Below, in pieces: positions 5,663 to 63,300 of a DNA stretch of 64,000 nucleotides. Position 1 is the first letter of the stretch. Each line of letters begins with the position of its first letter. Origin of the DNA: Trichoplax adhaerens (Eukaryota; Animalia; Placozoa). The stretch covers positions 1,523,693-1,587,692 of the forward strand of contig NW_002060953.1 of NCBI RefSeq assembly GCF_000150275.1, written 5' to 3'. The position numbers and the translations under genes were made by a program. The notes under the pieces are model-generated. The model worked only from the letters and a program-made list of their open reading frames with translations. It had not been told where the DNA came from and did not search any database.

Positions 5663-8401
5663 TTATGAAAGAATTTCGGCAACTTGGTCAACAGTGTTGA
5701 TTGAATGTATTTTATTGTTAGGAGATTGGTGTTCCTTCTGAGTTTCATTGCAGCCAATATTAGTGGTGGGTTCCTGTGTATTCGTAGATTTTTCTCGAAT
5801 ACCTCCTTTAGCAAAAGTAAAATGAGAAATATTTTTAGTGGCTTGTGCCCTTGTATTTAAATGGGGTCGAAAAAATATAATATACAACTTGGGAAGAAAT
5901 AAGAAAATCATAGGAGCTGCCCCTAATAAGAGGGTATTTGTTATGCTTAACGCAATAGTAGCGACGCCTGAGGTAAAGGAATCAACCATAAACGTGGCAA
6001 TCGCAATTATACTAACAGCAAGTGTAGACATGAAAATATATTTTGACTCATTAAAATTTTCAGGAAGAGAGCGCGTTTTATAAGCTAGATATAAACAAGT
6101 TGAGACAATGACTATGCTCCAACAGACTAAGTTAATATGTCCATAAAAATATTGAATATTACAATCAATGACAGTTTGATTCCCATCTCGATATTTTAAT
6201 AGAGGAAAGGGTAGGATGATTATAAAGGCAGTCAAGATTCCATTAGAAAGGAATAGAAAAGCCAAGATGAAAGCTACTTGGCAGTAAGTCTTGGTATATT
6301 GCTTCCTTCTACTGCTCATGTTTGTTACGTTCTGAAATATATTCTTGACTTGATTTGTTTTACATAATATAGTGGTGTATATTCCGATGCAACTCGTAGT
6401 AACAAGATAATTCTTGACAGCACATACTTCAGGAGTGGCAGGCAATAAATGGAGGACAGATACTAGTACCAGTAAAGCAAGGAAGGCTAATAGTAGATTT
6501 ATTAATATGAAATTGGAGCCCTTAACTATAGGTGTCTGTCTTTTTGCGATCATAATGGTCCAAATAAATATTAATAATAGCAAGTATAAACCTATTGCAA
6601 CATAACATATTATTGAAATTGGACTAGTATATGATAGCTTTAAAATTGATAAATCAGCGCAATATGTTCTATTTATGTCTGGATTAGTTAGAATTGGGCA
6701 TTTAGTACAAGTAGATTGATTTGTTGTATTAGAAATAGTCCTATTTTGACATAAACGACATGACCAGCAGCATGATCGATGTTGCAACTTTATTCGTCTA
6801 TCTTGATACATATAATATCCTGGAAGACAGTCTTGCGAGCATCGTGACAGGGGTTTATTATTCCCAAATAGATGATGATTCCACACAATACTTTCTTCAT
6901 TAAGAATTAGACCTTCGTTTTGATTCCAATAACCAATATCAACGGGTTCAAATCTTGACGTATTTGAATTCATCGATGATTGCAAATTAACAATATTAAA
7001 GGATATCTGACTGTTGCCATTAGGTGCAAACCGAAAAGAACGACTTGAGATACCATCAAAACGAATCTTACTTAAAATATTATTAAATTGCTGATTATTA
7101 AACGATTTTTCAGATATTGATGGGCAATAAGTTTCGTTACAGCCTAGATATTTATGTAGAGCATGAGCTAATGCTAATGTAGCATCCATAACGAAAGCTG
7201 AAATTGGACTTATTTTATAAAATGCTTGAAAATATCGAATTCTAGTCTTATTAAATGTACAATTCGGTATTTTAGCATCTATGCTAAGTATTTCTTGTAA
7301 GGCTTGTCTAAACCAGATGTTATCTAAATTATTACATAAATTAAGGCGATCCAGATAGAGATTAAACGCTTGCATAGTAACAGAATTGAAGGAAATGCCG
7401 ATTACCCCATTAAGGATACTTGATCTAATAGAATAGATTGACGGAGATATCAACCAGTGATAGGAACCGATCCAAGTTTTACCTGTTAGCTGATGGATAT
7501 CAGCTTGTTGAAAGAATCGATAGATGATTAATTCATTACCTAGTAGAACAACTACTTCTGATTTAGTCTGATTCTTTAATTTTAAAATAATTTTAGTAAT
7601 GGAAGACAAAGTATAGTTCTGATCAATCATCAATATCTCATCATAACATATGCCGTGATTTTGGGGTAGTCGGTTAATATCTTGAATAATATTTTCACTT
7701 ATGGTATTTCCAGCAATGACAATTGATATCCAATTCCAGTTAAAATAAGTTATAATCTCTTTAATGGCATACCAATATAGATCATCCGGTACAGAAGTAG
7801 AATAAAAGTAAGGAAATTGTTGCTGATCGGTTAAAGACTGATTGAAAAAATAGCTAACTTGAGTAAAGTGATTTTTGCTTGTATACGATGCCGTTTTAAC
7901 GGTTATATTGTATAATTTGGCACCAATAACACCAAATATAGGGGAAGAATTAGCCGAAATATTGTAAATTGGTTCTGGTAGACTAGATGGAGCGTTATTC
8001 GTATTATTGATTTTTGTATGGCTTTGCCCTGTATTCGAAAGTTTTTGATTGGATAAAACACTGCTGAGTAATTCCATAGTTTGGTTAATAGATGAAGAAG
8101 AATCTAGAAGTGTCCAACCAACTTGAATATTGGGTAGCAAAGCTGGGTTATGATTGATTAATTCCTCAATAGTATAAATCATAGCTTGAGTAAGTTGGAT
8201 ATTTTCCGGGTTAAAATACCGAGATAAATTGGACGATTGGTTCTTGTAATCTACTGTGTTAGGAAAAATACCCACTAACTGCACTTGACCTGGTTTAAAA
8301 GTACTGGATTGTGAATTACATAGTTGAAAGTAGCTATGAAAAACAAAATTGGAAAGCCACAATAGAAATAAGGAGCAAAACGATTTAATATGGTTCTTCA
8401 T
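5663..8401 (-). CDS. Class C GPCR (mGluR/CaSR-like), array copy 1, 912 aa, single coding exon
   Basis: Signal peptide; VFT (GIFPN, QAMIY, FNWNWIS, MDATLALAHAL); 9-Cys domain (RCSQDC..CCWSCRLC..CTKC..C); 7TM with TPIVKGSN, RSLPENFNESK and FLPKLYII. Confidence 0.95.
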   Translation of the reverse strand: MKNHIKSFCSLFLLWLSNFVFHSYFQLCNSQSSTFKPGQVQLVGIFPNTVDYKNQSSNLSRYFNPENIQLTQAMIYTIEELINHNPALLPNIQVGWTLLDSSSSINQTMELLSSVLSNQKLSNTGQSHTKINNTNNAPSSLPEPIYNISANSSPIFGVIGAKLYNITVKTASYTSKNHFTQVSYFFNQSLTDQQQFPYFYSTSVPDDLYWYAIKEIITYFNWNWISIVIAGNTISENIIQDINRLPQNHGICYDEILMIDQNYTLSSITKIILKLKNQTKSEVVVLLGNELIIYRFFQQADIHQLTGKTWIGSYHWLISPSIYSIRSSILNGVIGISFNSVTMQAFNLYLDRLNLCNNLDNIWFRQALQEILSIDAKIPNCTFNKTRIRYFQAFYKISPISAFVMDATLALAHALHKYLGCNETYCPSISEKSFNNQQFNNILSKIRFDGISSRSFRFAPNGNSQISFNIVNLQSSMNSNTSRFEPVDIGYWNQNEGLILNEESIVWNHHLFGNNKPLSRCSQDCLPGYYMYQDRRIKLQHRSCCWSCRLCQNRTISNTTNQSTCTKCPILTNPDINRTYCADLSILKLSYTSPISIICYVAIGLYLLLLIFIWTIMIAKRQTPIVKGSNFILINLLLAFLALLVLVSVLHLLPATPEVCAVKNYLVTTSCIGIYTTILCKTNQVKNIFQNVTNMSSRRKQYTKTYCQVAFILAFLFLSNGILTAFIIILPFPLLKYRDGNQTVIDCNIQYFYGHINLVCWSIVIVSTCLYLAYKTRSLPENFNESKYIFMSTLAVSIIAIATFMVDSFTSGVATIALSITNTLLLGAAPMIFLFLPKLYIIFFRPHLNTRAQATKNISHFTFAKGGIREKSTNTQEPTTNIGCNETQKEHQSPNNKIHSINTVDQVAEILS

Positions 8402-11938: not shown

Positions 11939-14100
11939 CCTTTTACAGATTTAAAGGAAAAATCAATGATACTTGCCGTAGCTTCTTGCTTTTGGATTTA
12001 ATTCAGGATGGAAAGAATAATACCAATTTTCGTGAAAGGCAGAAAAATAATGCAACTCCTCCACTGTATAATGTAATAAGAGCATCTAAGCTAGTAACTA
12101 GGCATTCATCTAGCAATAACTCAAAGAAGAGGTCGATTGTACTAATGACTATTATTAAAATAGTCGTTAATAGATATCGTTTGATTCACTAAAATTATCT
12201 GGGAGATGACGACTTTCATAATTAAAAAAAATTAACAGATGCAATATGGTAATCTATACCATTTCATTTAAGTAAATAAAATAGATTAGAACATTACTTA
12301 GAAATTCCATTTGATTATCAGCTTTGGGTTACCAATATAGTTCTGATGGTGTACTTAAGCTTATTATAACTGAAATGCTATTAGCGATCAATAAAACAAG
12401 AACTATCATGAGAATTTGATTATGATTTTTAGTTAATTTATTTCTGAACTCACTTTGATTAAACTTGTGCAAAAATATTACATATATTCGATAAATTTTA
12501 CATAACTTCGTCGTATCCCTACCTATATATGCTGTCGTTGCCAAATATAATCTTGCTTGACAGACAAGAACGGATGATTCTAATATAAAGGCAGTTGATG
12601 CAGGAATACATAATGCAGTAAAAATCAAAAATATTAAGAAGCAAGTAATTAGATACTTTACGACAGGTGTATTTCGTTTAGTGCTTATAGTTATCCAAAT
12701 TACGACCACAATTATAAAATATATAAACTCAATTAAATAACTAAAATCGAAATAGGGTCATTAAACTGTTTCTTTGCTAGTGGCAGATTGAAACATTTAG
12801 TCTCGTTATTGTTTGGATCAGCATCTAACAAACATAGAATACAATTATGTCCATTACAACTCTTAGGTATATCTGCATGATATGATTGACAAATTCGATA
12901 AAATCGACAACATGATTAATATCGATAATACAATGATTCCTTTGATTGTAAATACTGACCAGGAAGGCAGGTATTTAAACATTGTGCTTCTGGTATCTGA
13001 CCCCATGATTGGTTAGCGTTCCAAATTATACTAGCTATATTAATCAATAAACCACGTCTTTGATTCTAATAGCAAATTATAACAGGTTTTGTAGCTTTAT
13101 CTAATGTTTCTGTCTCTCTTTTTAAGTTAACAATATCAATTGAGGGTATGCTGGGTGTATTTTCGCAAATAGAAAAGAATGACTAGAGATTCCTTTAAAT
13201 TGGATAGATTGTAATATGCCATTGAATTAATGATGATTTAATGTTAGATTTTCAAGTCTTGAACAATATATTGCATTACAGTTTGATATACGACCTAATG
13301 AATGTACTAATGCTAAAACAGCATCCATGAAAAATATTGAGTGAGCATCAATCTTGTAAAACTGATGGGAATATTGAGTTTTCCAACTGATGTCAAGTCC
13401 GTAATTTGCAATAAAGCTGACATTATTAAAAACCAATTTTTATGAATATTTGACGCCATGCTTTTGCAAACCAAATATTTCGAATGTAATTCCATAAATC
13501 GAGTTCAATTAAAAAGGTTTTGTATTTGTGAATTTCATTTGAATTAAATGCAACAGCGAGAGCTCCTTCAAGTATATCAGCGCTTATAGAATAAATTGAC
13601 CGCGATATTAATCATTCTACCAAGCCAATCCATGTTTTCCATCTAAATTTTGACTTTCGGCTTGTTTCAATAATTAGTATAAATAATGTGTATTGCCAAG
13701 AAGTAAGACGATTGGTGATTGAGATTGATTTTGTAGTTTCACAATAATATATTTTATATCTGAATGTTCAGATTTATCTCGAATAAAGAATATTTGATTG
13801 GAGCATAAATGATTTTGTCGTAAAACTAACTTAGTTTAATGTATGTTATTTTTAGTAACTGTATCGCCAGCAACGACGATTGTAATCCAATTCCATTTGA
13901 AATAGTTTATTACTTCGGGCATGACATACCTATCAAAGTAGTCGGGAATTGAGGTACGATAAAGATACAGATCGCAATTGAATTTGGTACCACTAATACA
14001 ACTATTGGAGATTTACGGAATTTTTAATAAATTCGTACAATTTGCAATGGAAAGGGTAGTATTTAGTGACTATGCGCCAATAATCGAAACTATGGATGGA
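11939..14100 (-). pseudogene. Class C GPCR pseudogene with frameshifts and stops, N-terminus missing, C-tail running into an assembly gap
   Basis: Colinear minus-strand fragments: SIVSIIGA, YLYRTSIP, NYFKWNWITIVVAG, FFMDAVLALVHSL, TKRNTPVVK, LCKIYRI, SRHLPDNFSES, HPELN and ASIIDFSFK, separated by stops and frameshifts. Confidence 0.9.
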
Positions 14101-14503
14101 TTAATGATTAGACTTTAAATGACGAAAATACTTGAATATGTCGATGCTTTAATATCAATATAGCATTGATGATTAAATGGTATTGCGGATGATTGATACC
14201 GTTGTAAATGGTGATACCTTACGTATAACGTACCATTGGAATAAAATTAATTACTAATTACCGTACATTTTAGGCCTTATAAAGAATATATATTGTATAA
14301 GTAGCCAGATGGCTGTAAGGATTGATAATAGTAGGATGTATGTAGTATTTGTGATTCGTAATAGACTGTTAGGATAAAAATGATTAAACATCTTAACTAT
14401 CGACGTACGAACATTTTCTATCTCTATGCTATCTACTTATCGTAACGGCAGTCTACTAAAAGACTGGAATCGTATTTTCCTACGGAGGTTACCAGAATGT
14501 GAG

Positions 14504-16432: not shown

Positions 16433-19201
16433 TTATTCGTAGCAGTCACTGTCTTTTGAAATATTGACAACAGCAATTGGTTCTGGGTGCACTTGTGTTG
16501 TATTCGATCTGCGTTCTAATAATGTTGTCATAGTTCCTGAGCTAGAGCTTGACGTAAAGAATCCATTAGATTTTGTAGACTTACCAGAACTATGAAAGGA
16601 ATAATTAGTTATACTGGACATGATTTGTTGCCGAGTATTCAATTCTGATTTATAAAAGATAATATAGAGCTTGGGAAGAAATAAACAAAGCAATGGCGAA
16701 GAACCGATGATTAAAGTAGTTATCCCTCTTACGCTATCAGCCATACTTCCGCTTACTATAAATGTAATAGGGAAGCAACAAATTCCTAAAACCACTATTA
16801 ACAGCGATGATAGATAAATATGTTTTGATTCATTGAAATTATCAGGTAATGAGCGTGCTTTAAACGCAAAGTAGAGGCTAAGTAGTCCTAAAACAGCCAT
16901 CCACGTTAATAAGTTGATATCGAAATAGAAATTGTCAACATGACATAATATTTCCACTTGGTTATCATATGTGCGCTGCATTTTAATATTAATAGGTTTG
17001 GAAATAACTAAGCAAAGTAAAATTCCATTGACTACTAGTATAATAGTAAAAATAAAAGTAAATTGACTTCTATTCTTTGTTAAATGTGCCAGTTTTGCCC
17101 TCTTATTAACCGGATTGTGAAATATCGTAGAAACTTGATTTGTTTTACAAAGTATAGTTGCATAAACACCTATAACAAATGTGGTTATCATAAATATCCG
17201 TGTATAACAAATGGCTATGGTTGGCTGGGCTAGGAATAGAAAAGAAGCTGGTACACCTATTGCATGAAAAAATAGTAATAAGCTAGTAAGTTTAAAATTA
17301 GAACCTTTAACGATTGGAGTATTGCGCTTAACAATAATGACCGTCCATATGACAATTAAAAGGACAAAATATATCGTTACTATGATAAAATAAATGATTT
17401 TCATCGGTCTTCCATATCGCGCTTGGACTAATGGCAATGGTACACACTGCGTATTATTATGATTTGGATTGGTTAAATTTGGACACTGCGTGCAATAAAG
17501 AGAATTCATTTTATTCGTGATGCTATGCCCCTGACATTTCTTACAAGTCCAGCAGCAAGATAATTGACTCTGATGAATTTCTAAACCTTGATACATATGA
17601 TAGCCGGGAAGGCAATCTGCGGAACATCGTGATACAGGTATTTGAGTCCAAGGCTTATTTCCATTCCAAATGATTTTGTTGTCACTAATTAATAAGCCAC
17701 TTTTCCTGTCCCATGAACCAATTACAACTGCTCTTATTCTACTGTGTCCTTTTACCAATATTCTTTGCAAATTGACAATATCAAGAAGTGAATCTGTGTT
17801 TCCATCTGATCTAAAAGTAAATGCATAGCTTGATTTGCTAGCGAAATGAACACGACCTAAAATATCGTTGAAAAGCTCTCTGTCCAGGCTAGATGTTTGC
17901 GTTAGTGAGCAATGAGTATAATTACAGCCTAATAAACTATGCAAAGCATGGCCGTAAGCCAAGACTGCATCCATAACGAAGACTGCTTTAAAGCTTGGAG
18001 AATAGAATGAATTTCCCAACGATCTTTTCCATTCTCCATTTAATGTGCAATTGGCAACAGTTTTATCTACATCTAAACCTAATTCTGTTAACTTTTTCCG
18101 CCATAATTTCATAAACCACGGGTTGCCTAAATTATTGCAGAAATTGAGTTGGTGTAAATATTCGTCAAATCCTTTTATAGATTGACTATTGAAAGCAATA
18201 CCAATAGCACCGCCAATAATGCGATAATCAATTTGTTGAATTTTTCTTGATGTTAGCCAAGTATAGGAACCAATAAATGTTTTACCGGTCAAATTTTGAG
18301 CTTGTGCTTCCAATAAGAAGCTGTAGATAGTAGTTTCCTTGCCAAGAAGAACGATAGCTTGAGCTCGAGACTGATATTTTAGTTTCGATACAACGTTAGC
18401 GATTGCTTCCAGAGTAGCATTGTTTCCTAGTCGATAGATTTCTTCGTAGCATATTAAATGTTTATTTTGAGCTTCACTTTTGCTAGATTGAATCATTTCG
18501 AAAGTTGATTTGTCTGTGAGAACAAAAGAAATCCAGTTCCATTTAAAATAATTGATTATATCAAATATATTTTTAATTTGAGTAGTAGAGGATATAGATG
18601 TGCGATAGAAATATGAAAACACTTTACGGTTATTTAATAATTTGTCAAAAGAAAAGTAACTAATCTGTGGTATCTTTAAGCTGCTAGTCAATGCTGCCGT
18701 AGAAATGGTAATATCTTCATTTTTTGCACCGATTAAGCCAACTATAGGTGACGAATTTGTATAAGGACTAATTCTAGATTGCGTAACATTGTTATCAGTA
18801 AACTCTAAATTACACCGCAACTGTGGGAAGTTTCGCCTCTCAGATAGTATTAAATTAGAGGCAACATTTTGTAAGGCGACAGTACGATTTTCACAGGAAT
18901 CGATGATTTTCCAGCCAATTTTAATGCCTGGTAATAAATAAGGATTGTTATTGATAAACTTATCAATAGCATAAATCATAGCTTGAGTTAACTGTACATT
19001 TTCCGGGTTTAAGTTATAGCATTGTCTGGTTAAAGGATCATATCGGCCGGAATTGGGAAAAATTCCCTGCAGTAGAAATTGTCCTGATTTTGTGGCTACC
19101 ATAGTTGCTGTAGTAGGCTTGAAGAGTGACAAGATTGCCAAATAGTGCAGTAACAGGCTAATGAGAATAGTAGTCATTGCACTAAAATACTGATATTTCA
19201 T
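16433..19201 (-). CDS. Class C GPCR, array copy 2, 922 aa from ATG 19201
   Basis: Same architecture as copy 1. The ORF track starts at TTG 19249. The first ATG (MKYQYF) at 19201 is followed by a signal peptide. Confidence 0.95.
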   Translation of the reverse strand: MKYQYFSAMTTILISLLLHYLAILSLFKPTTATMVATKSGQFLLQGIFPNSGRYDPLTRQCYNLNPENVQLTQAMIYAIDKFINNNPYLLPGIKIGWKIIDSCENRTVALQNVASNLILSERRNFPQLRCNLEFTDNNVTQSRISPYTNSSPIVGLIGAKNEDITISTAALTSSLKIPQISYFSFDKLLNNRKVFSYFYRTSISSTTQIKNIFDIINYFKWNWISFVLTDKSTFEMIQSSKSEAQNKHLICYEEIYRLGNNATLEAIANVVSKLKYQSRAQAIVLLGKETTIYSFLLEAQAQNLTGKTFIGSYTWLTSRKIQQIDYRIIGGAIGIAFNSQSIKGFDEYLHQLNFCNNLGNPWFMKLWRKKLTELGLDVDKTVANCTLNGEWKRSLGNSFYSPSFKAVFVMDAVLAYGHALHSLLGCNYTHCSLTQTSSLDRELFNDILGRVHFASKSSYAFTFRSDGNTDSLLDIVNLQRILVKGHSRIRAVVIGSWDRKSGLLISDNKIIWNGNKPWTQIPVSRCSADCLPGYHMYQGLEIHQSQLSCCWTCKKCQGHSITNKMNSLYCTQCPNLTNPNHNNTQCVPLPLVQARYGRPMKIIYFIIVTIYFVLLIVIWTVIIVKRNTPIVKGSNFKLTSLLLFFHAIGVPASFLFLAQPTIAICYTRIFMITTFVIGVYATILCKTNQVSTIFHNPVNKRAKLAHLTKNRSQFTFIFTIILVVNGILLCLVISKPINIKMQRTYDNQVEILCHVDNFYFDINLLTWMAVLGLLSLYFAFKARSLPDNFNESKHIYLSSLLIVVLGICCFPITFIVSGSMADSVRGITTLIIGSSPLLCLFLPKLYIIFYKSELNTRQQIMSSITNYSFHSSGKSTKSNGFFTSSSSSGTMTTLLERRSNTTQVHPEPIAVVNISKDSDCYE

Positions 19202-21625
19202 GGTTAAATTTCCACGGAAAAGTAAAATTATTTCGTTAAAATTGATCAATCGATCTTGTCCTTGTATTAACCTCGGTTATAAATGACACTTTAATTTGAA
19301 TAGCGGAAATAAAAATTCTCTTGCAAATTAATGGTTGATTTTTTACATAACTTGCCCAATAATTAACACCTGCTCAAATAATTCAACACTTCTAATTCTA
19401 AATTGGTGTTAATGACAAAATTAATATTAAGAAAGAAAACTTCGATAGTGGTGAACAGTATTTTTATAACATTGTTATAATATAATGTGAAATAGTAACT
19501 AAACAGCTATTTAAGCTATCTTAATATTACTAAATCAATTTTTTTGACAACAACATGTTTCCTTAGCATTATGAATCTGTATTTATCATTTATCAGGACT
19601 CTTATGCTTTCTGTATAACTTCGATTAACTATCACTTGTTCAAGTGTGCTCGTGCATAGGCATACGAACTCTGAAATAATACATCAGCATCTGGTTTCAA
19701 TTAGTATAGAACAATCTCACAAAAAAAAGTAGTAAGAATTTAATTAGGAACTAAGTCATCAATCTACGTGATGCCATTTCGTTATGAAATAAATTTTGAA
19801 TTTACCGGCACAAACTAAAAAGAGAGAGATATTTACATCGCAAATGTTGGAATATAAAATAAAATTCAACAATCTGCAAATTTATCAAAAAATTATTGTG
19901 TAATAAGATATGCTATCCATTTGGTAATGTCAGCTGTGTCTTCTCAGTTTTAACTTTTCAATTCTATTGCCTTAACAATATCAGAATAAATAATTACTTT
20001 GATAGTAGGTACAGATAATGTTCTTGGATGGAGACGATTTTTGAATTCTTTTATTGTAAATCATAGTTTGTAAGACTGGGAAATTGAATGACAGCGCAAA
20101 CTAGGCAGTTTGTATAAACTTACATGAGTGTCTTCTGATTATAAGCAAATTAGAATGACAGTACCATCTCGATAGCTTATGAAAAAAGAGCGAATATCAC
20201 CTGATTATAATCAAAAGAGCTTATTGTAACAACTACACCAATGCCCATACAAGAATAATAGAACATAGAAATTCTAAGTTTCATATACTCTAATATATTC
20301 GCTTCAATGCATGCAGCTAGAAAGGGAATCCAATGCAAATAGAGCAAATTTTTTTTAGCTAAAATTCATATAAAATTATAAGAACAAAGCGTCACGTAAT
20401 TAGTTTCGTGGCACGGATCTTGCAAGTGCTTACTGTATAGAATAAGGAAATAATCATTTATAAGGCCAATAAACCATGTTGCACTTTCAATTATAGCTAA
20501 ATCTATTTGTTAATATAGTTAACAGAGTTAATGGTATTCTAGATTTTATTATGCTTCATTTGTCAGTAAAACGTTGAAGTACGGTATTATCCTACAATTA
20601 ATAGTTATAGAACTCCAGTGAACGTTGTAGAATTGCATTTAGGATAGAAAAGATTAAGCCAATAACTTAAGTATTAGAAACTTTGCTTAAATGCGAAAAT
20701 ACCATTCATGATTTCTCTAAAGAATTGAATTCTCTTGAGGATCTATCAGGTTTCTATTACTATCCAAATTATTAAAGTCTCAGTCAAGAATTATAATTCG
20801 GTCTATAGCTTTGATGTTAAGAAAGGTTTGTGCTATCAGTGACCTAAACTAATTATGTATATAGAAAGTAATATAGGATATATACAAACAGTAATGGACA
20901 GAGCAGAAAATCCATTTACATGCTAGCAATTATTCCAATGACTGAATAGCCGAAAAATTATAAATACTTACTACATTTTATTATCGTATTTAGTAATATT
21001 ATTTTACCTGAACTTAATGAAGCACAAATTATAACTTAACTTATCTTAGTCTGTTTTAGCGACTACGGTATCAAAGTAGCTTTTATAAAATATCCACAAA
21101 TAGACATCATTTGTACAGACCTGCTAATAACGTTCTGACACCTTAAAAAGCCAATTTAATATAGCTATCTATCAAGGATCATTTTTCACATTCATTTTGA
21201 AGATATTTTCAGAAGATATAAGTCTATTTTTAAGTAGCAATTTGAATGTTGTGTATGATGTTCATGTACAGCGTAATGTAATATTCTATTAATAAAAGGC
21301 CAAATAATTTCTGTTGTTTATCTACTAGATAATGTAGTTTCATCTCAAGGTTGCAAAGTTTTATACTTATATATGCAAATTTCAATACAGCCACAAAACT
21401 GAGCTTACAAATAATGTAAATTAGATTGAATTGACTTAATGATTAAAATTGTTTTTAAAAATTGCGGAGAAAGTTTCCTAAATTTTCCTTTCTTCAATGC
21501 AGAATAAGAAGTAAGAATTCATAACATGGCATACAATTTCGATGCTCTTATCTTGAGTTCGCTGTCTCTCGATTGTAACGGGATTAATCATGATAAGGCA
21601 AAATAAAATTTCATTAACCAAGGAA

Positions 21626-22270
21626 TCAATACATGCTATAAAAATGAACTAAGTTCCCTTTAGAATCAAAGCCGTCAGCTTGACTTGATATACCCTTAAA
21701 ACGAATGTGACATAAAATAGCGTTAAATTTGTTTCTATTTAACTTATTAGTTATTAATGATGGACAATGAGTAGGATTGTAACCCAACGCTTTATGCAGT
21801 GCATGACCGAAAGCTATAACTGCATCCATAACAAATACTGCCTCATAGATGCGAGAATAAAATTTGTTACTAAATTGTGTTTTTAAAGAACTATCCAGCG
21901 TACAATTAGCCGTAATCATATCAGCATTTAAATCCAATTCTGATAATTTTTGATGCCATAATTGCATGAACCGTGGGTTATCCAAATTATTGCAAAAATT
22001 AAGTCGGTCTAAATAGTCCCGGAAGCCTTCTAATGACCTACTACTAAAAGCAATTCCAATTACAGCGCCGATAATGCGATAATCAATTTCTTGAATTCTT
22101 GGTGATGAAAGCCAGGTATAGGAACCAATGAAAGTATTACCGGTTAAATTATCAGCTTGTGTTACAAGAAAAAAGCGGTAAATAGTATTTTCATTACCTA
22201 GAAGAATTGCTTTAGAGTGAGCGTTACGTTTTAATTTTAACACAACGCCAGTAATTGCTTCCTCAGTATT
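21626..22270 (-). pseudogene. Isolated fragment of a class C GPCR (C-terminal half of the VFT), closest to copy 2
   Basis: TEEAITGVVLKLK..GNTFIGSYTWL..IDYRIIGAVIGIAF..LNFCNNLDNP..FVMDAVIAFGHALH. Similarity stops after FDSKGN. No start codon, Cys-rich domain or 7TM is adjacent. A 50-N gap lies just upstream. Confidence 0.85.
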
Positions 22271-22394
22271 ATTTTAGTCAAGCTCATATATTCCTTTATC
22301 ACGTAACAATCAAAGGCTCAGTACAAAGCAACAGAAATTACTATTGTGTGAATATTAGTTATCACCTCTGTAAATACATTGCTCTGCACAGAGT

Positions 22395-41971: not shown

Positions 41972-42666
41972 TTAAAACAAATTAATTACAGATCGATAAA
42001 TTCTGTATAATTAGAGTTGGATGGAGTTACACTAGAACATAAATTGTAATACTTTAAACTGGTACTGTTATAAATCTGGTAAACGGGATATTTTCGACAT
42101 TTAAAACAACATAATTGCGTTGATTGTGAAATATTTTAATCGTAATATAGATAATATGCAAGACGACAATCGATAGATCATCTCACTATCGAAATATCGT
42201 TCTGTGGTCGCTTTCCATTCCAAATAATTTTGTCGCTATTAATAACTAGACCCTGTAATTTATACCAATAACCTATTTTAGCTCTTTTAAGGTTTGCATA
42301 TTTACTGTAGTTTTCTTTCTGGAAATTAGCTATAACGAGGAGTGACTTGACTGAGCCTTCAGATGAGAAAGTTATATTTACATTTATAAATGTAGAAAAT
42401 TGTAAGTTACTAAGAAAATCATTAAATTATTGATAATTGGAAACATGATCTTGCTGATATATACTGTTGGTCCTATTGCAACCTAGGAACTTATGCGATA
42501 CTTAAACAAATAATAAAGCAGCTTTGATAGCGTGTCCAGAGAGAAAACCGATACTATAGAGCGATTTAAAGTTCTTTCAAATTACTATTAATTAAACAGT
42601 TCCGCATGATTATATCAGAATTAAGTCGTAACTCATTTAATAGACAATATACCATAATGATCGCAC

Positions 42667-44140: not shown

Positions 44141-46942
44141 CTACAGTACATCATTTTCAATAAACTCCGGGTTAGTTATGCCTTTCACGGCTAATGAGCT
44201 TGCCCTATTTGGAGTCTGAGGAGAAAGAATCTTACGTCCAATAGCTATGGGAGAACTTTGCATATAACTGTCAGTGGAGTTATACGGTAAAGGCGATCTT
44301 GCTGCAGGCTTGCTATTTCCAAAAGAAAAGTTAGCCACACTTACTACAGCTTGTTCTTGAGTATTTAACTCAGGCTGTAGGAATATTATATAAAATTTAG
44401 GTGCGAAAAGACAAATTAAAGGAACTAAACCAAATAAAAGGGTAGTTATGGATCCAATAATCCTATGTAGAATCCCAGTTGTAGCTATAAATGCTGGTAT
44501 TCCTGTCAAGGATACACAAAGAAGCATTAACGAAGACAAAAATATGAACTTTGCCTCACTAAAATTATCCGGTAATGATCGTGTGCGATACCCCATGAAT
44601 AATGTAACTGGACATAAGATACCTATACTAATAGTAGCAATTAGAAAAATTGGCTCTCCTCCAACTCGACACATAACTTCCATAGCTTGCCCCGAGTTTG
44701 CCCCGGATACTTGCAGCTTAAGCAATTCTGCTGGCTTATAATAGTATACTCCTATCATGAGGCCATTCAGTAGGAGTAAAATGAATATAATACTGATAAC
44801 TTGGTATTTATTCCTAACTACTTTGGATCGAAAGGAATTATGATTGATGGAATTTTTAAATATCAAGGAAATCTGGTTGGCTTTACATATGACAGTTAGC
44901 AGGATGCCACAATCGGTAGTACATACTAAGCAGACAGTTGCTAAACAAACTTCTTTACGAACTGGCAAGAAAAAAGTCAAAGAAGCTGGAAGAGATACTG
45001 AAATAAAGAATAAAACAAGACTTAGAAGAATAGAATTAGATGCTTTAATAATTGGAGTATTCCTTTTAAAAATAATGATAACCCAGCAGAATAGGAGGCA
45101 TATAATAAAAATAGAGGCCACGATGTAATAGACGATAACGAATCCATGATTCCAACTAAATTGAACAATATCAAAATCAATGCACTGAGTTCTGTTAGCA
45201 TTTGGCTTAGTAAAACTTTGACATGTTATACATTCAAATTGATTTGTTGTATTAGATATTGTCGGTGATAAGCATGGATGGCATGTCCAACAACATAAAC
45301 GATTCAGAATATTTTGGCTGCGAACTTGGTAGAATCCAGGTTGGCAATCGATAGAACACCTAGATTGAGGTACTTCGAACCATGGTCTATTTCTATTCCA
45401 GACAATTTCCTCATCGTTTATTTTTAGACCTTCTTGATCATTCCAATAACCAATGATAATAGGCTCAATACTAGTAGTACCGTTAATTATTCTTGGTTGG
45501 AGGTTAATAACGTTATAAGACAACTTACTACTACCATCGGATCGAAAACGAAAATGTTGACCGGTAATTCCTTTGAAGGTAATATTACTTAGGATACGAT
45601 TGTATGTTTCAGAGATTCTTTCAATCGTATGAATTGGAGGACAATACGTAGCATTGCATCCTAGATATTCATGCAATGCATGGGCAAAAGCTAATGCAGC
45701 GTCCATTACAAATGCTGAAATATAACTAATAGAATAAAATGAATCCCTATAAATACTTTTTAATTTTAATTCTAAAGTACAGTTGGCGATAATTTCATCA
45801 ACGTTATAGTTTAAAGACTTCAACGTTTCTCGCCATACTTGCATAAACCAAGGATTAGCCAAGTTGTTACAAAAATCGAGTTGATAAATATATTTTGCAA
45901 AGTCTATTAATGTATTGGCTTTCAAATCAATTCCAATTGCGCCTGCGATTACATCAGCATTTATCTTACGAATTCGAGGGGAATTTATCCATCCGTACGA
46001 GCCAATGAATGTTCTACCTGTTAGTTGTTGCGCTTGAGCTTGCTGAAGAAGGTGATAAATAATAGATTCATCACCTACTAAGGAGATTACATGAGAAGTA
46101 GGCCGTATCTTTAAGTCGTGAATGACCTTTACTAGTTGATTTTGAGTATAATTATCGTAAAGAGTAGCTATATTTCCAATACATATTTTTCGGCCGGAAA
46201 TTCCAATACTCTGGAGCATCGGTAGAACAATATCGATCGTTTCACTACCGGCAACCACCACTGAGCCCCAATTCCAATTAAACTTAGTGGCAATATCCAT
46301 TAAAGCATCAACTTGAGCATGATGTGGAGGAGAAGTACGGTAGAAATAGGGATAAAATTTTCGATTCGTTAAAAGTGAACTAAAAGAAAAATAACTAATT
46401 TGAGGGAGCCGGAGGCTACTTGTAAATGATGCAGTAGATAAAGTAACAAATTCCGACTTCTCTGCTAAAATTCCAAATGTTGGCGGATGATTAGTTTTAT
46501 TGGCGTTAAGGCCATCCATAATGGTAATTTGTGTTTTATTTAAGTTGTCAATATTAATTTCACATTCCAATTCCGGAAATTCTTCTGGTTCTGACAAGAA
46601 GACATTGGCTGTAAGAGCAGTAATAGCTAATTCTCGTGATGAGCAAGAATCCATTAATGTCCAACCAACATGAATACCAGGCAGCAGATTTGGATTATCG
46701 TTAATCAATTTGTCAATAGCGTAAATCATGGCTTGAGTCAACTGTATATTGGTCATACTAAATTGACTACATAATCTAGTAGTTAGGTTGAAACGAAGCG
46801 AATTGGGAAATATACCTTGCAGCTGAACATGACCAGATTTTCGACTAATAATTTGATTTTTGCTAAACGTTAAACCATGGCAATCGAATAAATTAATTAG
46901 AAAAACGCAGAAGAATAGGAGTAACGTGTTGATTTTCAACAT
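44141..46942 (-). CDS. Class C GPCR, array copy 6, 933 aa from ATG 46942
   Basis: The ORF track starts at a non-ATG codon at 47101. The ATG at 46942 (MLKINTLLLFFCVFLI) begins a signal peptide. VFT, 9-Cys domain and 7TM (RSLPDNFSEAK, FAPKFYII) follow. Confidence 0.93.
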   Translation of the reverse strand: MLKINTLLLFFCVFLINLFDCHGLTFSKNQIISRKSGHVQLQGIFPNSLRFNLTTRLCSQFSMTNIQLTQAMIYAIDKLINDNPNLLPGIHVGWTLMDSCSSRELAITALTANVFLSEPEEFPELECEINIDNLNKTQITIMDGLNANKTNHPPTFGILAEKSEFVTLSTASFTSSLRLPQISYFSFSSLLTNRKFYPYFYRTSPPHHAQVDALMDIATKFNWNWGSVVVAGSETIDIVLPMLQSIGISGRKICIGNIATLYDNYTQNQLVKVIHDLKIRPTSHVISLVGDESIIYHLLQQAQAQQLTGRTFIGSYGWINSPRIRKINADVIAGAIGIDLKANTLIDFAKYIYQLDFCNNLANPWFMQVWRETLKSLNYNVDEIIANCTLELKLKSIYRDSFYSISYISAFVMDAALAFAHALHEYLGCNATYCPPIHTIERISETYNRILSNITFKGITGQHFRFRSDGSSKLSYNVINLQPRIINGTTSIEPIIIGYWNDQEGLKINDEEIVWNRNRPWFEVPQSRCSIDCQPGFYQVRSQNILNRLCCWTCHPCLSPTISNTTNQFECITCQSFTKPNANRTQCIDFDIVQFSWNHGFVIVYYIVASIFIICLLFCWVIIIFKRNTPIIKASNSILLSLVLFFISVSLPASLTFFLPVRKEVCLATVCLVCTTDCGILLTVICKANQISLIFKNSINHNSFRSKVVRNKYQVISIIFILLLLNGLMIGVYYYKPAELLKLQVSGANSGQAMEVMCRVGGEPIFLIATISIGILCPVTLFMGYRTRSLPDNFSEAKFIFLSSLMLLCVSLTGIPAFIATTGILHRIIGSITTLLFGLVPLICLFAPKFYIIFLQPELNTQEQAVVSVANFSFGNSKPAARSPLPYNSTDSYMQSSPIAIGRKILSPQTPNRASSLAVKGITNPEFIENDVL

Positions 46943-53270: not shown

Positions 53271-53400
53271 AGCAATGCGCGTTGATGTACATCTTCCAAA
53301 GCGGTGCGTTACCCCCTTTGTCCACTTGCATATAGAAAGCTTAACGAATTTTTAAGGGGTAATGCACTGCTTTGGAAGATGTATATCAACGCGCATTGCT
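53271..53400. repeat. Inverted repeat: 45-bp arms (53271-53315 and 53356-53400) with a 40-nt loop
   Basis: 42 of 45 positions are Watson-Crick complementary. The other three are G-T on the plus strand. Confidence 0.92.
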
Positions 53401-54041: not shown

Positions 54042-56756
54042 TCATGAACTGGTGATAGTGGCGCTTGAATCAGATGATTTGTAAGACTGTCCACATTTTG
54101 TGTGTCCGGATAGGTTGCTAAATGTAAACTGCGTAATACTACTCTTTATTCCAGCTTTGGTATTTAAATCCGGCCGAAAGTAAATAACGTAAATTTTAGG
54201 AATAAAGAAGCACAGTAAAGGCGAAAGACCAAAGGTTAGCATAAATAGGGACAAGAGATAGTCACGAACCATACCGTATAAGAGGAATAATGCAGGACTA
54301 CTAATAAATTCCAAAGCCAGAAGCAGAATTGAAGATAAATAAATATATCTAGATTCATTGAAATTGTCTGGTAATGAACGGGCTTTGAAAGCGAGATAGA
54401 CGCATAGTAGACCCAATATGCCAGAGGATACCAGCTGATATATGCTGGGGTAACTGCTTTCTTCGAAACAAATTATCGTCAAATATCCTTCAATTCTCAC
54501 ATTTTTGGTAACTTTTATAGGATAGATTAGCATTAAACAAACTACAATACCAATATTGATAAATACAATGAGGAAAATGAATAAAATTTGTACGCTTGTT
54601 TTTCTCAGGGGAGCAGTTTTAGAATCCTGATTGATAGCATTTTGAAAAATGACCGAAATTTGATTTGTTTTACATAAGATTGTGGCAAGTATACCTATAT
54701 CCATAAGGGTGACTAATATTACTCTGGCATGGCATACTATCATTGATGGAGGCCTTAAAAATAGACCACCTGCGGGGACACATAAGGAAATAAAAAAGAG
54801 TAATATATTGACTAATGTAAAGTTAGAACCTTTTACAACTGGAGTATCCCTTTTCCGAATCATGACTGACCAAATCCATAGCAAAACAATTAAGTATAAG
54901 CTCGCGACAATATAGAATACAATGGAAATAGTATCATCCCAACGAATTGTTACAACTTTCAAAGGAATACATGCAGTTCTGTTGGCATTGGACTTAGTTT
55001 CATTTGAACACTGTATACAAGAATATTGATTTGTTGTGTTGGTGATACTTTGCTTGGGGCATACTTTACATTTCCAACAGCATGGACGATAACGTTTATC
55101 AATACTGTTATCATGATACCAATATGTCCCTGGTAGGCACGGGGATGAACATCGCGAGTTAGGAGCGTTATTTCCAACTGAATTATTATCCCAATCAATT
55201 AATGATTCGTTAATAACTACACCAGCCTCTCTATCCCAATAACCGATCATAACTGGCCTCACTGTTCGATTTTCATAATTAGTTTCTCGTTGCAAATTAA
55301 CAATATCTAGTTTCATAATTGGACTACCTTCGAAATCAAACTGGAAATTATTACTTGACACACCAGGAAACTGAATACGGTTAAGAAAATCATTAAGACG
55401 CAGCTTGTTTAAGTCGATATCATTTAATGGTGGGCACGAGGTTGAATTGCAGCCTATCGCGTTATGAAATGCGTTAGCTAGCGCAAGTACAGCATCCATA
55501 ACAAATATAGAGATATATGATGGCGAATGAATTGAATTAAGGAAGGATAACTGTAGTTGCTCAATTGTACATTCTTTCAAAACTGTACTGATGTTATATC
55601 CTGCTTTACTAAGTTGAGTTTTCAGTACATCCATGAACCATGGATTATCGCCATTATTACATAGGTTCAGGTTTTTTAAGTAACTATGATAACGATCTAA
55701 TGATCGTCCTTTAAATTTAAAGCCAATACTACCTCCGATAACATCGGCCCTAATATTGTACATGAGTGAAGAAGTTAACCAAGTATAAGAACCTACGAAG
55801 GTCATACCAGTTAAGTTTAATGCTTCGGCAACCTTAAAGAAAGAATAAACTACACGTTCGACACCAATCAATACAATTACACGTGATGATTGATTTTTTA
55901 GATTCAAAACAACATCGACCAACTCAGATTTGGTGTAGTTATCATTTATTTTACCCAAATAGCTATAGCAGATATTATATGAAGGACCAGCGAAATAGAT
56001 AAATTTGGATATTAAATCTATGGCTGTATTGCCTGCAAAGACAAATGAAACCAAATTCCAATTAAAACGAGTTAATAATTCCATGATTGCTGTCGCCTGA
56101 AAAGATGCCGGTGGGGATGTGCGATAAAAGAATGGAAAGTATCGACGAAGGCTTAGTGTATAGTCGAAAGAAAAATAGCTTATTTGACAGACTCTGAGGC
56201 TACCGGTATAGGCCGCAGTTGCCACCGTAACGTCGTCCGACTCATCACCTATAACTCCAATTATGTACGAATGATTGGACATATGCTCATGGTTGTGACC
56301 TCTGCTTACCATATCTGACAACCTATTATTATTGCCACTGGTTTGTATCAGCTTACATTGTAAATTTTGATAATCCTTTCTTTCTGATAAAATTAGACTA
56401 GATGATAAGGCAGAAATGGCTATTTCACGAGAGCCACAGGAATCGATAACAATCCACCCGACCGGAATTCCAGGTAATAAATTTGGATTATTATTGACTA
56501 ATTCCTTAACAGTGTATATCATAGCCTGTACAAATAGTATATTTTTTACACTGATATCGCTACATTGTCGACTTGTCGCGTTATATCGACTGGAAATCGG
56601 GAAAAGAGCTTGTAATTGTACTAATCCAGCCTTCATGGACATACGTCGACTTTGAGCATATCCAATATTGTTACTACCAGGATAAATTGAAATTGTTATA
56701 AGGAGAAGCGCAATGAAATAGTTAAGCCGCTGAGAAATTGCACAACCGGTAGCCAT
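54042..56756 (-). CDS. Class C GPCR, array copy 7, 904 aa
   Basis: Signal peptide, VFT, 9-Cys domain, 7TM with RSLPDNFNESR and FIPKIYVI. Confidence 0.95.
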   Translation of the reverse strand: MATGCAISQRLNYFIALLLITISIYPGSNNIGYAQSRRMSMKAGLVQLQALFPISSRYNATSRQCSDISVKNILFVQAMIYTVKELVNNNPNLLPGIPVGWIVIDSCGSREIAISALSSSLILSERKDYQNLQCKLIQTSGNNNRLSDMVSRGHNHEHMSNHSYIIGVIGDESDDVTVATAAYTGSLRVCQISYFSFDYTLSLRRYFPFFYRTSPPASFQATAIMELLTRFNWNLVSFVFAGNTAIDLISKFIYFAGPSYNICYSYLGKINDNYTKSELVDVVLNLKNQSSRVIVLIGVERVVYSFFKVAEALNLTGMTFVGSYTWLTSSLMYNIRADVIGGSIGFKFKGRSLDRYHSYLKNLNLCNNGDNPWFMDVLKTQLSKAGYNISTVLKECTIEQLQLSFLNSIHSPSYISIFVMDAVLALANAFHNAIGCNSTSCPPLNDIDLNKLRLNDFLNRIQFPGVSSNNFQFDFEGSPIMKLDIVNLQRETNYENRTVRPVMIGYWDREAGVVINESLIDWDNNSVGNNAPNSRCSSPCLPGTYWYHDNSIDKRYRPCCWKCKVCPKQSITNTTNQYSCIQCSNETKSNANRTACIPLKVVTIRWDDTISIVFYIVASLYLIVLLWIWSVMIRKRDTPVVKGSNFTLVNILLFFISLCVPAGGLFLRPPSMIVCHARVILVTLMDIGILATILCKTNQISVIFQNAINQDSKTAPLRKTSVQILFIFLIVFINIGIVVCLMLIYPIKVTKNVRIEGYLTIICFEESSYPSIYQLVSSGILGLLCVYLAFKARSLPDNFNESRYIYLSSILLLALEFISSPALFLLYGMVRDYLLSLFMLTFGLSPLLCFFIPKIYVIYFRPDLNTKAGIKSSITQFTFSNLSGHTKCGQSYKSSDSSATITSS

Positions 56757-60621: not shown

Positions 60622-63300
60622 CTAAATTGCAGATATGGCAGTGCTTCCATTATTTCTTGATGGCATTTGATTAGGATATTTGGTTTGCTTGTCAACCTTT
60701 GCAAATGTAAACTTAGCAATACTAGCTGCAGCTTCATATTGTGTATTCAAATGCGGTTGACGAATGATAATGTACATTTTTGGCAAGAAGTAACAAAATT
60801 GAGTCACGAATCCATAAAATATCATCATTAAACAAGACAGTATTGATCGCAACTGACCATGAAAAAAATACATGACTGGAGTTACGGTTAATGCAAGAAA
60901 TGCATACAAAATACTAGCTATCAAGATATATCGAGCATCATTATAGTTATCCGGTAATGATCTTATACGAAAGGCAAATACAAGGCCAACGGTAACTGCT
61001 GTTGTCCATAGCACTACAGCAGCAGTAAAGGCCGGAAAGCTGAAAACTTCGCATGATTTTACGAGCTGTTGTTTGTCGTTCTCATATTTGATAATTTTTA
61101 GTGGTTGATATACGATTAACCCAACGATAATCGCGTTAGTAATAGTCATAGTTACAATGAGAACAATAACTTGATTTCGTGTTTTTGACAATTTCTTGTA
61201 TAAGGACCGCTGACGAAAGCCATTTCGGAATATAGCTGCTACTTGAATTGTCTTGCAAATGACAGTAACTGCTACGCCAGTCTGACTATTAGCAGTGAGT
61301 AGTAATCTAAATGTGCAATTGAAAACAGTACTGTCACAAAGAAACATGATTGAAGCAGGAAGGGACATAGCGTTATAACCCATTAAAATATTAATCAACG
61401 TAAAATTGGATCCTTTAATTACAGGAGTATTTCGTTTGATGATAACGACAACCCAAATAAATATCGAATTAATCAAGAAGATAAACCATAGGCAGCAAGC
61501 AATAATAAAGTATTTATCTCTAAATGAAATATTAATGATTTCGTAACCAATACATTTCGTTTTGTTCTCATTTGGAGCAGTAAATGGCTCACATTTAGTG
61601 CAATTTGACTGATTGGTAGAATTAGTTATAGAATGAAAGTAGCATTTAGTGCAGAGCCAACAACATTTTAGTGATTTCTTGTCAAGACTATTGTAATAAC
61701 GGTAAGTACCGGGCTGACAATCATCAGAACAGCGAGCAACTGGTACAATACCACTATTCCATTTTATTTTTGTTTTATTAATAATTAAACCGTAATCTTC
61801 ATCCCAATATCCAACTTTGACATGTTTTATTGGACCTTTACCGATACTCTTCGCTGGAACTTGCAAGTTAATTATATTGTAAAGTAAATGATTAGTTCCG
61901 TCGGCGCGAAAGTGAAAATCGTCGTTTGATATGCCCTTAAAGGTTACCTTGCTTAAATATTCATTTAATTTTAGTCGATCGTAATGAGATGCAAGATTAT
62001 CTACTGGAGAACAGTGTGTTGAATTGCAACCTAATTTGCTATGTAGTGCGTAAGCTAAAGCTAATGCTGCATCCATAACATAAGCAGCGGAGTCATGCAT
62101 GGAATAAAATGATTCTGAAAAGTAACGTTTGAGATTATTATTAATTATACAGCTTGCCATTATGGATTCAGTATTATTTCCAAGAGATTGGAGTTTTTCT
62201 GACCAAGCTGCTATAAACCAAGGATTCTTAATATTATTACAGAAGTCAAGTTCGTCTAAATAAGATTGAAAGTCCTGTAACGAACCATCCATTATATCCA
62301 TACCCAATGCACCACCAATTACGCTAGGATTGAGTGCATTAATTCTAGCAGAACTTAACAAATCATACGACCCTATCCATGTCTTACCTACTAAACCCTC
62401 GGATTCTACTTTTCGAAGGAATGGATAAATAAGCGCTTCACCACCAGCGAGAATAATGACGTTCGAACGAGTTAAGTATTTAAGTTTTAATACAATTTCC
62501 TTTAAATTAGATTGCGTGTAATTGTCATTTATAATTCCGGTATATCCAATACAAATTTCATTATTAAAAAGTAATTTAGAAACAATTTTTTTATAATTCT
62601 CGGCAAAATTTGATCCAGCTACGATAATAGATATATAATTCCAGCGAAATTTTGCAACAATATCAAGGAATACTAGCACCTGCATCGTTATTGGTGAACG
62701 TGAACGATAGAAGTATGGAAAGAGTTGACGAAGTGATTGACTTACGTGGGATGTACCGTAACTGATTTGAAGAAAATACAAACTACTAGTATATATGGCC
62801 AACGAAGTTGAAATGTCATCTGATTTCTCACCGACAATTCCAAGAATTGGAGTGGTCATTGTGTGATTATATTGAAATTTTATGTTACTATCAGTCCATT
62901 GATTAGGTATATGGTTGAATTTTTGGTATGAAGGCCAGTCAAAATTGGCTGGATTACTGAACATTAATTCATAACTTACCAATTTCATAGCCATTTCTCG
63001 AGATGAGCAAGAATCAATTAGTGTCCAACCAACTTTGATACCAGGCAATAAGTTTTGATTGGCATTGATTAAAATATCTATAGCGTATATCATAGCTTGT
63101 GTGAGCTTTACATTGACTAAATTGAATTCATAGCATTGATTTAAGGTACTGTTATAATGTAAGGTATTAGGAAAAACACCTATAATTTGAATATCTCCTG
63201 GTTGATAAGAGTAAATATGGCAATGTGAAGACTTTATCTTTACAAAAGTAACAATGACGAAAAAAAAAATATAACTTTTAATAAGTTGCTTTAGGACCAT
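60622..63300 (-). CDS. Class C GPCR, array copy 8, 892 aa; appears the most divergent intact copy
   Basis: Signal peptide, VFT, 9-Cys domain, 7TM with RSLPDNYNDAR and FLPKMYII. Confidence 0.95.
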   Translation of the reverse strand: MVLKQLIKSYIFFFVIVTFVKIKSSHCHIYSYQPGDIQIIGVFPNTLHYNSTLNQCYEFNLVNVKLTQAMIYAIDILINANQNLLPGIKVGWTLIDSCSSREMAMKLVSYELMFSNPANFDWPSYQKFNHIPNQWTDSNIKFQYNHTMTTPILGIVGEKSDDISTSLAIYTSSLYFLQISYGTSHVSQSLRQLFPYFYRSRSPITMQVLVFLDIVAKFRWNYISIIVAGSNFAENYKKIVSKLLFNNEICIGYTGIINDNYTQSNLKEIVLKLKYLTRSNVIILAGGEALIYPFLRKVESEGLVGKTWIGSYDLLSSARINALNPSVIGGALGMDIMDGSLQDFQSYLDELDFCNNIKNPWFIAAWSEKLQSLGNNTESIMASCIINNNLKRYFSESFYSMHDSAAYVMDAALALAYALHSKLGCNSTHCSPVDNLASHYDRLKLNEYLSKVTFKGISNDDFHFRADGTNHLLYNIINLQVPAKSIGKGPIKHVKVGYWDEDYGLIINKTKIKWNSGIVPVARCSDDCQPGTYRYYNSLDKKSLKCCWLCTKCYFHSITNSTNQSNCTKCEPFTAPNENKTKCIGYEIINISFRDKYFIIACCLWFIFLINSIFIWVVVIIKRNTPVIKGSNFTLINILMGYNAMSLPASIMFLCDSTVFNCTFRLLLTANSQTGVAVTVICKTIQVAAIFRNGFRQRSLYKKLSKTRNQVIVLIVTMTITNAIIVGLIVYQPLKIIKYENDKQQLVKSCEVFSFPAFTAAVVLWTTAVTVGLVFAFRIRSLPDNYNDARYILIASILYAFLALTVTPVMYFFHGQLRSILSCLMMIFYGFVTQFCYFLPKMYIIIRQPHLNTQYEAAASIAKFTFAKVDKQTKYPNQMPSRNNGSTAISAI

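Follow-up and report, generated by a model that had tools for sequence, protein, structure and literature searches.

Replacement of the amino-acid-binding signature in the flytrap pockets of a tandem class C receptor array in Trichoplax adhaerens

Trichoplax has repeatedly been cited for the richest set of "amino acid receptors" in animals, and a tandem array of class C GPCR (G-protein-coupled receptor) genes on one of its scaffolds raises the question of what such receptors sense. The array lies in a window of 64,000 nucleotides (C1404:1523693-1587692) of the Trichoplax adhaerens assembly (105.6 Mb, 1414 contigs); "the window" means this whole stretch, and feature coordinates are positions in it unless a scaffold position is given. 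Here, we show that its eight intact receptors have exchanged the residues that contact the backbone of amino acid ligands in related receptors, and that this rebuilt pocket is common to 13 Trichoplax genes. We consider it likely that the window receptors belong to a clade whose orthosteric flytrap site was rebuilt once, in the clade stem, and that they are orphan receptors whose ligand is likely not an amino acid.

Residue equivalences were taken from a MAFFT alignment of the eight copies and from pairwise HMMER alignments of copy 5, the reference copy of the analysis, with mGluR4 (chain 7e9h_R) and CaSR (8szf_B). Against mGluR4, and in mGluR1 numbering, copy 5 has D173 at S165, I196 at T188, S216 at D208, E244 at Y236, Y324 at D318, V416 at K409, and L74 at R78. 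The alignment with CaSR gave the matching register, with S147 opposite D173, S170 opposite I196, D190 opposite S216, Y218 opposite E244, and E297 opposite Y324. Over V-G-x-x-G, Q-I-S-Y, F-x-R, W-N-W/Y, G-S/T-x-x-W, and F/Y-V-I-D-A, the alignment of copy 5 with mGluR4 is ungapped and of top posterior confidence, and the motifs flanking the contact positions (VIG, QISY, F.R, WNW/Y, G-S/T-x-x-W, and FV.DA) are conserved.

Across copies 1 to 8, the equivalents of S165 are Y, E, N, D, D, E, D, and D (acidic in 6/8), those of Y236 are I, T, D, M, E, T, A, and F, and those of K409 are I, K, I, I, V, I, I, and S. The T188 equivalents of copies 2 to 8 are F, F, F, I, F, F, and S; copy 1 has a one-residue deletion in this loop, and where the gap is put decides whether its residue reads F or N. 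In place of R78, every copy has L, Y, or F. The D318 equivalent is Y in all eight and also in a pseudogene fragment at 21508..22294, which keeps G-S-Y at this motif and carries E opposite K409. Amino-acid-sensing class C receptors (mGluR, CaSR, GPRC6A, T1R1, and OlfC) contact the ligand backbone through Ser/Thr at 165, Thr/Ser at 188, Asp at 208, Tyr at 236, and Asp/Glu at 318, and none of these five is kept in 6/8 copies. Retention in the remaining two is partial, with Asp at 208 (VPD) in copy 1 and with Ser at 188 and Phe at 236 in copy 8. Of the two glutamate side-chain contacts, Arg78 is lost in 8/8 and Lys409 in 7/8 copies.

A preliminary description of this DNA had proposed, from an alignment by eye, that the amino-acid signature is lost in all eight receptors. 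This is borne out: its residue lists were reproduced with MAFFT, and mGluR4 and CaSR agreed on the register. Its statements that the D318 motif changes to Y in every copy and in the fragment, and that K409 is kept in copy 2 only, with E in the sister fragment and I, V, or S elsewhere, also held in the alignment. The claimed absence of the Y236 aromatic applies to seven copies and not to copy 8, which has Phe, and at the D208 position copy 1 retains Asp. The proposal that the genes do not encode glutamate receptors is well supported, as R78, K409 (except in copy 2), and the backbone contacts are gone relative to two solved references, whereas other receptors of the same genome keep such residues in the same alignment. 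More broadly, the alignments give good support to the prediction that the receptors are neither glutamate nor amino-acid receptors.

Identity to the solved receptors is 22-24%, and the differences could in principle be an alignment artefact hiding structural equivalents that are canonical. As an internal control, 29 further loci of the same genome with long class C open reading frames (ORFs), mostly intronless and a few without the N-terminal part, were aligned together with the eight copies. The full S-T-D-Y-D/E-K signature was recovered in seven control genes (L001, L002, L003, L006, L010, L022, and L023) and most of it in five more (L004, L014, L015, L016, and L025), so the method finds the signature where it is present. 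Moreover, the two references agree on one register through ungapped blocks of high confidence whose flanks are conserved, and a shift by one residue would restore only the Ser at 165, and only in some copies. An AlphaFold2 model of copy 5 residues 38-530 (predicted local distance difference test [pLDDT] 89.1; predicted template modeling score [pTM] 0.89) places the contact-equivalent residues (model residues 136, 159, 179, 207, 287, and 379) at helix N-termini or in loops just after strands, which we take to be where the contact residues of mGluR and CaSR flytraps sit in solved structures. In Foldseek, CaSR and mGluR ectodomains were the top matches of this model, with template modeling (TM) scores of 0.70-0.73 at 22-24% identity. 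With this evidence, we regard the chance of an artefact as negligible.

The eight genes carrying these pockets are intact, intronless, and all on the minus strand, and encode proteins of 892-933 amino acids, counted from the first plausible ATG; with no introns in the copies, a spliced gene model is unnecessary. All eight contain the Pfam domains ANF_receptor (E 2.7e-36 to 5.3e-48), NCD3G (over the Pfam cut-off), and 7tm_3 (E 9e-39 to 8.4e-48). The best database matches were TRIADDRAFT_59558, 59557, 59566, 59554, and 29561. Copy 1 (5663..8401; 912 amino acids; TRIADDRAFT_59554; published as mGluR-theta_Tad) has Y164 at the S165 position (codon 7910-7912), Y314 at the D318 position (codon 7460-7462), and Asp at the D208 position. 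Copy 2 (16433..19201, from the ATG at 19201 in an ORF of 16433-19249; 922 amino acids; TRIADDRAFT_11427; mGluR-gamma_Tad) has E162 and Y313 at the S165 and D318 positions, respectively, and is the sole copy with Lys at the K409 position. The corresponding pair of residues is N167 and Y318 in copy 3 (23573..26287; 904 amino acids) and D168 and Y319 in copy 4 (29027..31747; 906 amino acids; TRIADDRAFT_59557). In copy 5 (37028..39787; 919 amino acids; TRIADDRAFT_59558; mGluR-iota_Tad), the pocket codons are 39566-39568 (L74), 39269-39271 (D173), 39200-39202 (I196), 39140-39142 (S216), 39056-39058 (E244), 38888-38890 (E300), 38816-38818 (Y324), and 38540-38542 (V416). Copy 6 (44141..46942, from the ATG at 46942 in an ORF of 44141-47101; 933 amino acids) has E164 and Y316, and copy 7 (54042..56756; 904 amino acids) has D174 and Y324. 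Copy 8 (60622..63300; 892 amino acids) combines D161 and Y312 with Ser at T188 and Phe at Y236. Apart from copies 2 and 6, the coordinates given are those of the long minus-strand ORFs themselves.

The rebuilt pocket is common to the eight window genes and five others, L018, L019, L020, L021, and L024, which lie on the same scaffold just past the window (1590-1647 kb). The array comprises eight intact genes and three pseudogenes in 58 kb, with the five further clade genes downstream. Four outside proteins have the same pocket: P0003, P0004, and P0013 from Logan assemblies and P0006 from an ENA metagenome (ERZ23499115). P0003, from Logan runs SRR30664516/7, shares 61% identity with copy 6. In a maximum-likelihood tree of 34 proteins, the clade set of 16 rebuilt-pocket sequences (13 from Trichoplax plus P0003, P0004, and P0006) formed one split with a Shimodaira-Hasegawa-like approximate likelihood ratio test (SH-aLRT) support of 100 and a stem of 1.2 changes per site, in which copy 6 and P0003 were sisters. 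The most economical reading of this tree would be a single remodeling event in the clade stem, followed by duplication. The same tree puts the separation between copy 6 and the other paralogues before the divergence from the organism carrying P0003.

A word-index protein search returned eight proteins and was too insensitive for claims of absence; an exhaustive profile search was therefore used. The clade profile was scored against 1.84 billion protein representatives, 2,237 of which matched at E<=1e-30, and the best 150 were inspected. For a pocket census, 145 of these 150 matches supplied 192 flytrap domains in which each of the five backbone positions was aligned. All five canonical backbone contacts are present in 143/192 domains. 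Within the best 150, the combination of Tyr 318 with a residue other than Ser/Thr at 165 is confined to 12 clade representatives, apart from one domain of a multi-domain fusion protein at rank 144. The top single-gene protein outside the clade among them, Trichoplax 59571, scored 710 bits, compared with at least 1009 inside the clade, and has the canonical signature. The named clade representatives come from Trichoplax only, and the Trichoplax sp. H2 counterparts are annotated as "Metabotropic glutamate receptor 4", "7", and "2". So far, judging from the retrieved sequences, the clade appears in placozoan-like sequences only, and this scaffold carries at least 13 of its genes in intact form.

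The non-clade entries that scored above 59571 in this search are fused gene models of the fish Polypterus. The top non-placozoan matches, P0009 (3927 amino acids) and P0014 (3171 amino acids), are both named 'CASR protein, partial' of Polypterus senegalus, and the profile matched them in 13-15 stretches. Most likely, automatic annotation joined tandem class C genes or exons in these models, and their high scores reflect sums over domains, not close kinship. Within the clade, L018 (C1404:1597385-1602631) and L019 (1590162-1595408) are 97% identical as proteins, which points to a very recent duplication (synonymous divergence [dS] 0.028); their ratio of nonsynonymous to synonymous divergence (dN/dS) of ~0.8 is uninformative at 2-3% divergence. 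Their pocket is the odd one of the clade, with Arg at T188, Tyr at D208, Asn at E292, and a net positive charge. L012 (C1404:1655684-1660924) and L007 (1670356-1675605) form a pair of their own on the same scaffold. L012 has also lost the signature, by different residues (A, K, E, L, G, and S), so this genome has seen more than one pocket loss. In the same cluster, L009 (C1404:1649280-1654514) has a 615-amino-acid ORF for a class C seven-transmembrane (7TM) domain without a flytrap, and it yielded no ectodomain alignment.

What replaced the canonical contacts was assessed over 16 pocket positions from the mGluR1 contact list. A core emerges among the 16 clade sequences, which are ~41% identical over the flytrap domain: Tyr 318 in 16/16, Glu 292 and an acidic residue at 165 in 14/16 each, Ser 187 in 14/16 (copy 8 has Thr, copy 1 a deletion), Leu 78 in 12/16, and Phe 188 in 11/16. 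Around it, positions 74, 166, 208, 236, 293, and 319 form a variable rim. The mean formal charge over the pocket positions is -1.6 in the clade versus -0.3 in other Trichoplax receptors. This negative net charge results from a loss of basic residues (0.8 versus 2.2), not from a gain of acidic ones; acidic enrichment of the pocket was rejected, with 2.44 acidic residues in the clade and 2.47 in the other receptors. Aromatic pocket residues number 2.8 versus 2.0. The acidic and aromatic pocket that had been proposed from inspection of the sequence is borne out only in part, with a small rise in aromatic residues and none in acidic ones.

Based on these residues, we propose that in the clade stem the five residues serving the alpha-amino and alpha-carboxyl groups (S165, T188, D208, Y236, and D318) would have been replaced, and that both basic residues for the glutamate side chain (R78 and K409) would have been lost as well. 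The new core would consist of mostly Asp/Glu 165, mostly Phe 188, the invariant Tyr 318, the kept Glu 292, and, at 409, a hydrophobic residue. This pocket would have spread by tandem duplication, and some copies would have decayed to pseudogenes. Presumably, the flytrap still closes on a ligand and drives G-protein signaling as in other class C receptors. With an acid where the carboxylate was held and no acid for the ammonium on lobe 2, an alpha-amino acid would be barred from the canonical pose, so that a ligand other than an amino acid is most likely. Candidates are small molecules, neutral or cationic, and peptides. A cationic small molecule would fit the electrostatics, as would, equally, a basic peptide; an amine would be a reasonable guess, and peptide ligands, as for mammalian V2Rs, offer an equally good analogy. 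It is tempting to speculate that the clade was re-specified for cationic small molecules (such as amines, polyamines, or quaternary ammonium compounds like choline and betaines) of algal or bacterial food, held by the carboxylate at 165 and the aromatics at 186, 188, and 318. We offer this narrower version tentatively and consider it rather unlikely. If true, such ligands would for the first time have a class C family of their own, and an animal without neurons would have a chemosensory repertoire.

Several observations weigh against a flytrap rebuilt for a new ligand. The pocket set is neither more nor less conserved than the whole domain (16 positions versus 478 columns), and thus gives no evidence of pocket-specific selection: mean pairwise identity is 0.384 in the pocket and 0.407 in the flytrap, the hypervariable fifth of columns includes five of the 16 positions (P=0.23), and the highly conserved set includes three (P=0.51). 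The preliminary suggestion that pocket variation implies a different ligand for each paralogue accordingly found no statistical support. The invariance of Tyr 318 is itself unexceptional, as 79/478 flytrap columns are at least 85% identical. Ser occupies position 164 in 5/8 window copies and 10/16 clade sequences, with Thr in two more, and together with the near-universal Glu 292 this makes a shifted mode of amino-acid binding possible. Furthermore, the residue equivalences are predictions from sequence alignment and secondary-structure context, and the distribution of the motif rests on the best 150 of the 2,237 proteins found at E<=1e-30.

A pocket set that evolves at the rate of the rest of the domain would suit receptors whose flytrap binds no orthosteric ligand, and which act as obligate dimer partners or are driven via the 7TM or cysteine-rich domain, as is GABA-B2 in the GABA-B heterodimer. 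The loss of the canonical contacts fits such a role, and many co-located paralogues could pair mutually. We nevertheless find it unlikely, considering that Tyr 318, the acidic residue at 165, and Glu 292 form a core that is stable over 16 sequences of ~41% identity. In addition, the orthologue-like pair of copy 6 and P0003 has 12/16 pocket residues in common at 65% identity overall, compared with 5/16 at 55% for the paralogues copies 4 and 5 (P ~0.05), a pattern that suits specificity residues better than drift and hints at specificity divergence, although numbers are small. Retained amino-acid sensing, for instance of basic amino acids in a shifted pose with other contacts, appears about as improbable. 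Ser or Thr at 164 in 12/16 and Glu 292 in 14/16 clade sequences could provide such contacts, basic amino acids could be accommodated by a pocket of net negative charge, and the genes are counted among the Trichoplax 'amino acid receptors', with amino acids altering Trichoplax behavior (PMC10133484). However, in 6/8 copies an acid takes the place of the Ser that holds the alpha-carboxylate, and no acid is available at 208 or 318 for the alpha-ammonium, except for Asp 208 of copy 1. The retention of all five contacts in 143/192 related domains further indicates that amino-acid sensing normally constrains them. Sensing of inorganic cations (Ca2+, Mg2+, or other metals) by an acidic pocket, as in CaSR, would agree with the CaSR ectodomains as best Foldseek matches and with the net negative charge. 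We consider it very improbable: the match to CaSR is no better than that to mGluR (TM 0.70-0.73 for both), S147, S170, D190, Y218, and E297 of CaSR are all unconserved in copy 5, the acidic count is not raised, and 13 paralogues for few ions are hard to motivate. A site rebuilt once for a ligand that is likely not an amino acid thus remains our preferred explanation.

The window genes are under purifying selection. For copy 6 and P0003, the proportions of nonsynonymous (pN) and synonymous (pS) differences are 0.235 and 0.695, giving a ratio of 0.14, and for copies 4 and 5 they are 0.273 and 0.643, giving 0.23; both ratios are rough as dS is saturated. The K-T-N-Q motif in transmembrane helix 3 (TM3), N-F-N-E at the start of TM6, and P-K-x-Y in TM7 are present in 8/8 copies, although copies 6 and 8 show conservative variants. 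The cysteine-rich domain has nine Cys residues; a script counted them in six copies, and they were read from alignment A1 for copies 4 and 8. A long, low-confidence loop in lobe 1 (A1 columns 165-215; residues 111-121 of the copy 5 model) carries one or two Cys in copies 2, 4, 5, 6, and 7 and none in copies 1, 3, and 8. In mGluRs and CaSR, this loop bears the inter-subunit disulfide Cys, and its Cys pattern here suggests that covalent dimerization may differ among the paralogues.

Three remnants of the family, all on the minus strand, lie between the intact genes. A family pseudogene at 12170..14213 spans residues 121-812, is spread over three reading frames, contains many in-frame stops, and adjoins a gap at 11612-11938. 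The fragment at 21508..22294, which the preliminary description had placed at 21.6 kb, shares 58% identity with copy 2, is disrupted by in-frame stops and an internal deletion, and adjoins the gap at 22395-22444. Another fragment, at 41974..42640, covers residues 377-594, is 46% identical to copy 4, has in-frame stops, and abuts the gap at 41135-41971. Each carries its own stops or frameshifts inside read sequence, which identifies all three as real pseudogenes whatever the gaps hide; gaps as the cause of their appearance were rejected, given the internal stops in all three remnants beside gaps. With a further run of N at 47736-48434, the window contains four such runs, every one outside the eight ORFs, and reading frames and residues are therefore independent of gap continuity. 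The window is AT-rich (~30% G+C). Between copies 6 and 7, the array is broken by a putative, unrelated multi-exon gene (48500-54000). On the plus strand at 2759-3361, a 200-amino-acid ORF matches nearly the whole Pfam profile Adenine_glyco (3-methyladenine DNA glycosylase I, Tag; E 1.2e-78), a bacterial-type enzyme on an animal scaffold.

At least five members of the clade, among them three window genes, were included by Ramos-Vicente et al. 2018 (PMC6307864) as unclassified Trichoplax "mGluRs": TriadT59554 (copy 1), TriadT11427 (copy 2), TriadT59558 (copy 5), TriadT59566 (L020), and TriadT29561 (L018). The authors reported that the backbone contacts are highly conserved in most non-bilaterian sequences and predicted a minority to bind glutamate. 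Nikitin et al. 2023 (PMC10133484) listed 85 Trichoplax "amino acid receptors", including 34 mGluR-like proteins in four clades. The literature searched yielded no account of the amino-acid signature being fully replaced in this clade. Where databases and papers list its members as amino-acid or glutamate receptors, they are probably wrong, and with at least 13 counted genes lacking the amino-acid contacts, the number of amino-acid receptors in Trichoplax is inflated. A defined, conserved, non-canonical pocket is now at hand for deorphanization, and genes that are intronless and ~2.7 kb long should be easy to clone and test.

Compared with mGluR1-8, the receptors have the same three-domain architecture, flytrap fold, and 7TM hallmark motifs, and mGluRs are their best sequence matches among solved structures (E ~1e-71 over full length). 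They differ in that both the backbone and the glutamate side-chain contacts are replaced, and in that the clade stands separate on its long stem, away from those Trichoplax receptors in which the signature is kept. The class IV mGluRs of insects (DmXR/mGluRX) are likewise predicted not to bind glutamate and have Arg78 and Lys409 replaced; however, they keep the backbone contacts that the Trichoplax clade has lost (PMC6307864). Three of the four Trichoplax mGluR-like clades have been placed nearer to CaSR, taste, and vomeronasal receptors (PMC10133484). Amino-acid sensors of the CaSR/GPRC6A/T1R1 type are the closest structural matches here, and CaSR differs in S147, S170, D190, Y218, and E297, which read D, I, S, E, and Y in copy 5.

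Class C flytraps without canonical contacts are also found in partners of the GABA-B2/T1R3 type, which are single genes acting in fixed heterodimers. In contrast, at least 13 Trichoplax paralogues have a conserved new core in common. Mammalian V2Rs form tandem, lineage-specific class C arrays with pseudogenes, and they have given up the amino-acid signature, with the flytrap re-specified to peptide or protein cues. The Trichoplax array resembles them in being tandem and lineage specific and in showing birth and death of copies, with eight intact genes and three pseudogenes. It is not orthologous to them, its motif of acidic 165 and Tyr 318 is the placozoan's own, and its receptors are orphans, whereas V2R ligands are known. 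The array is most likely an orphan repertoire of chemoreceptor type with a re-specified flytrap, which would make it comparable to that of mammalian V2Rs; signature loss in tandem class C arrays is familiar from V2Rs, and what is new is the signature replacement in a placozoan clade.

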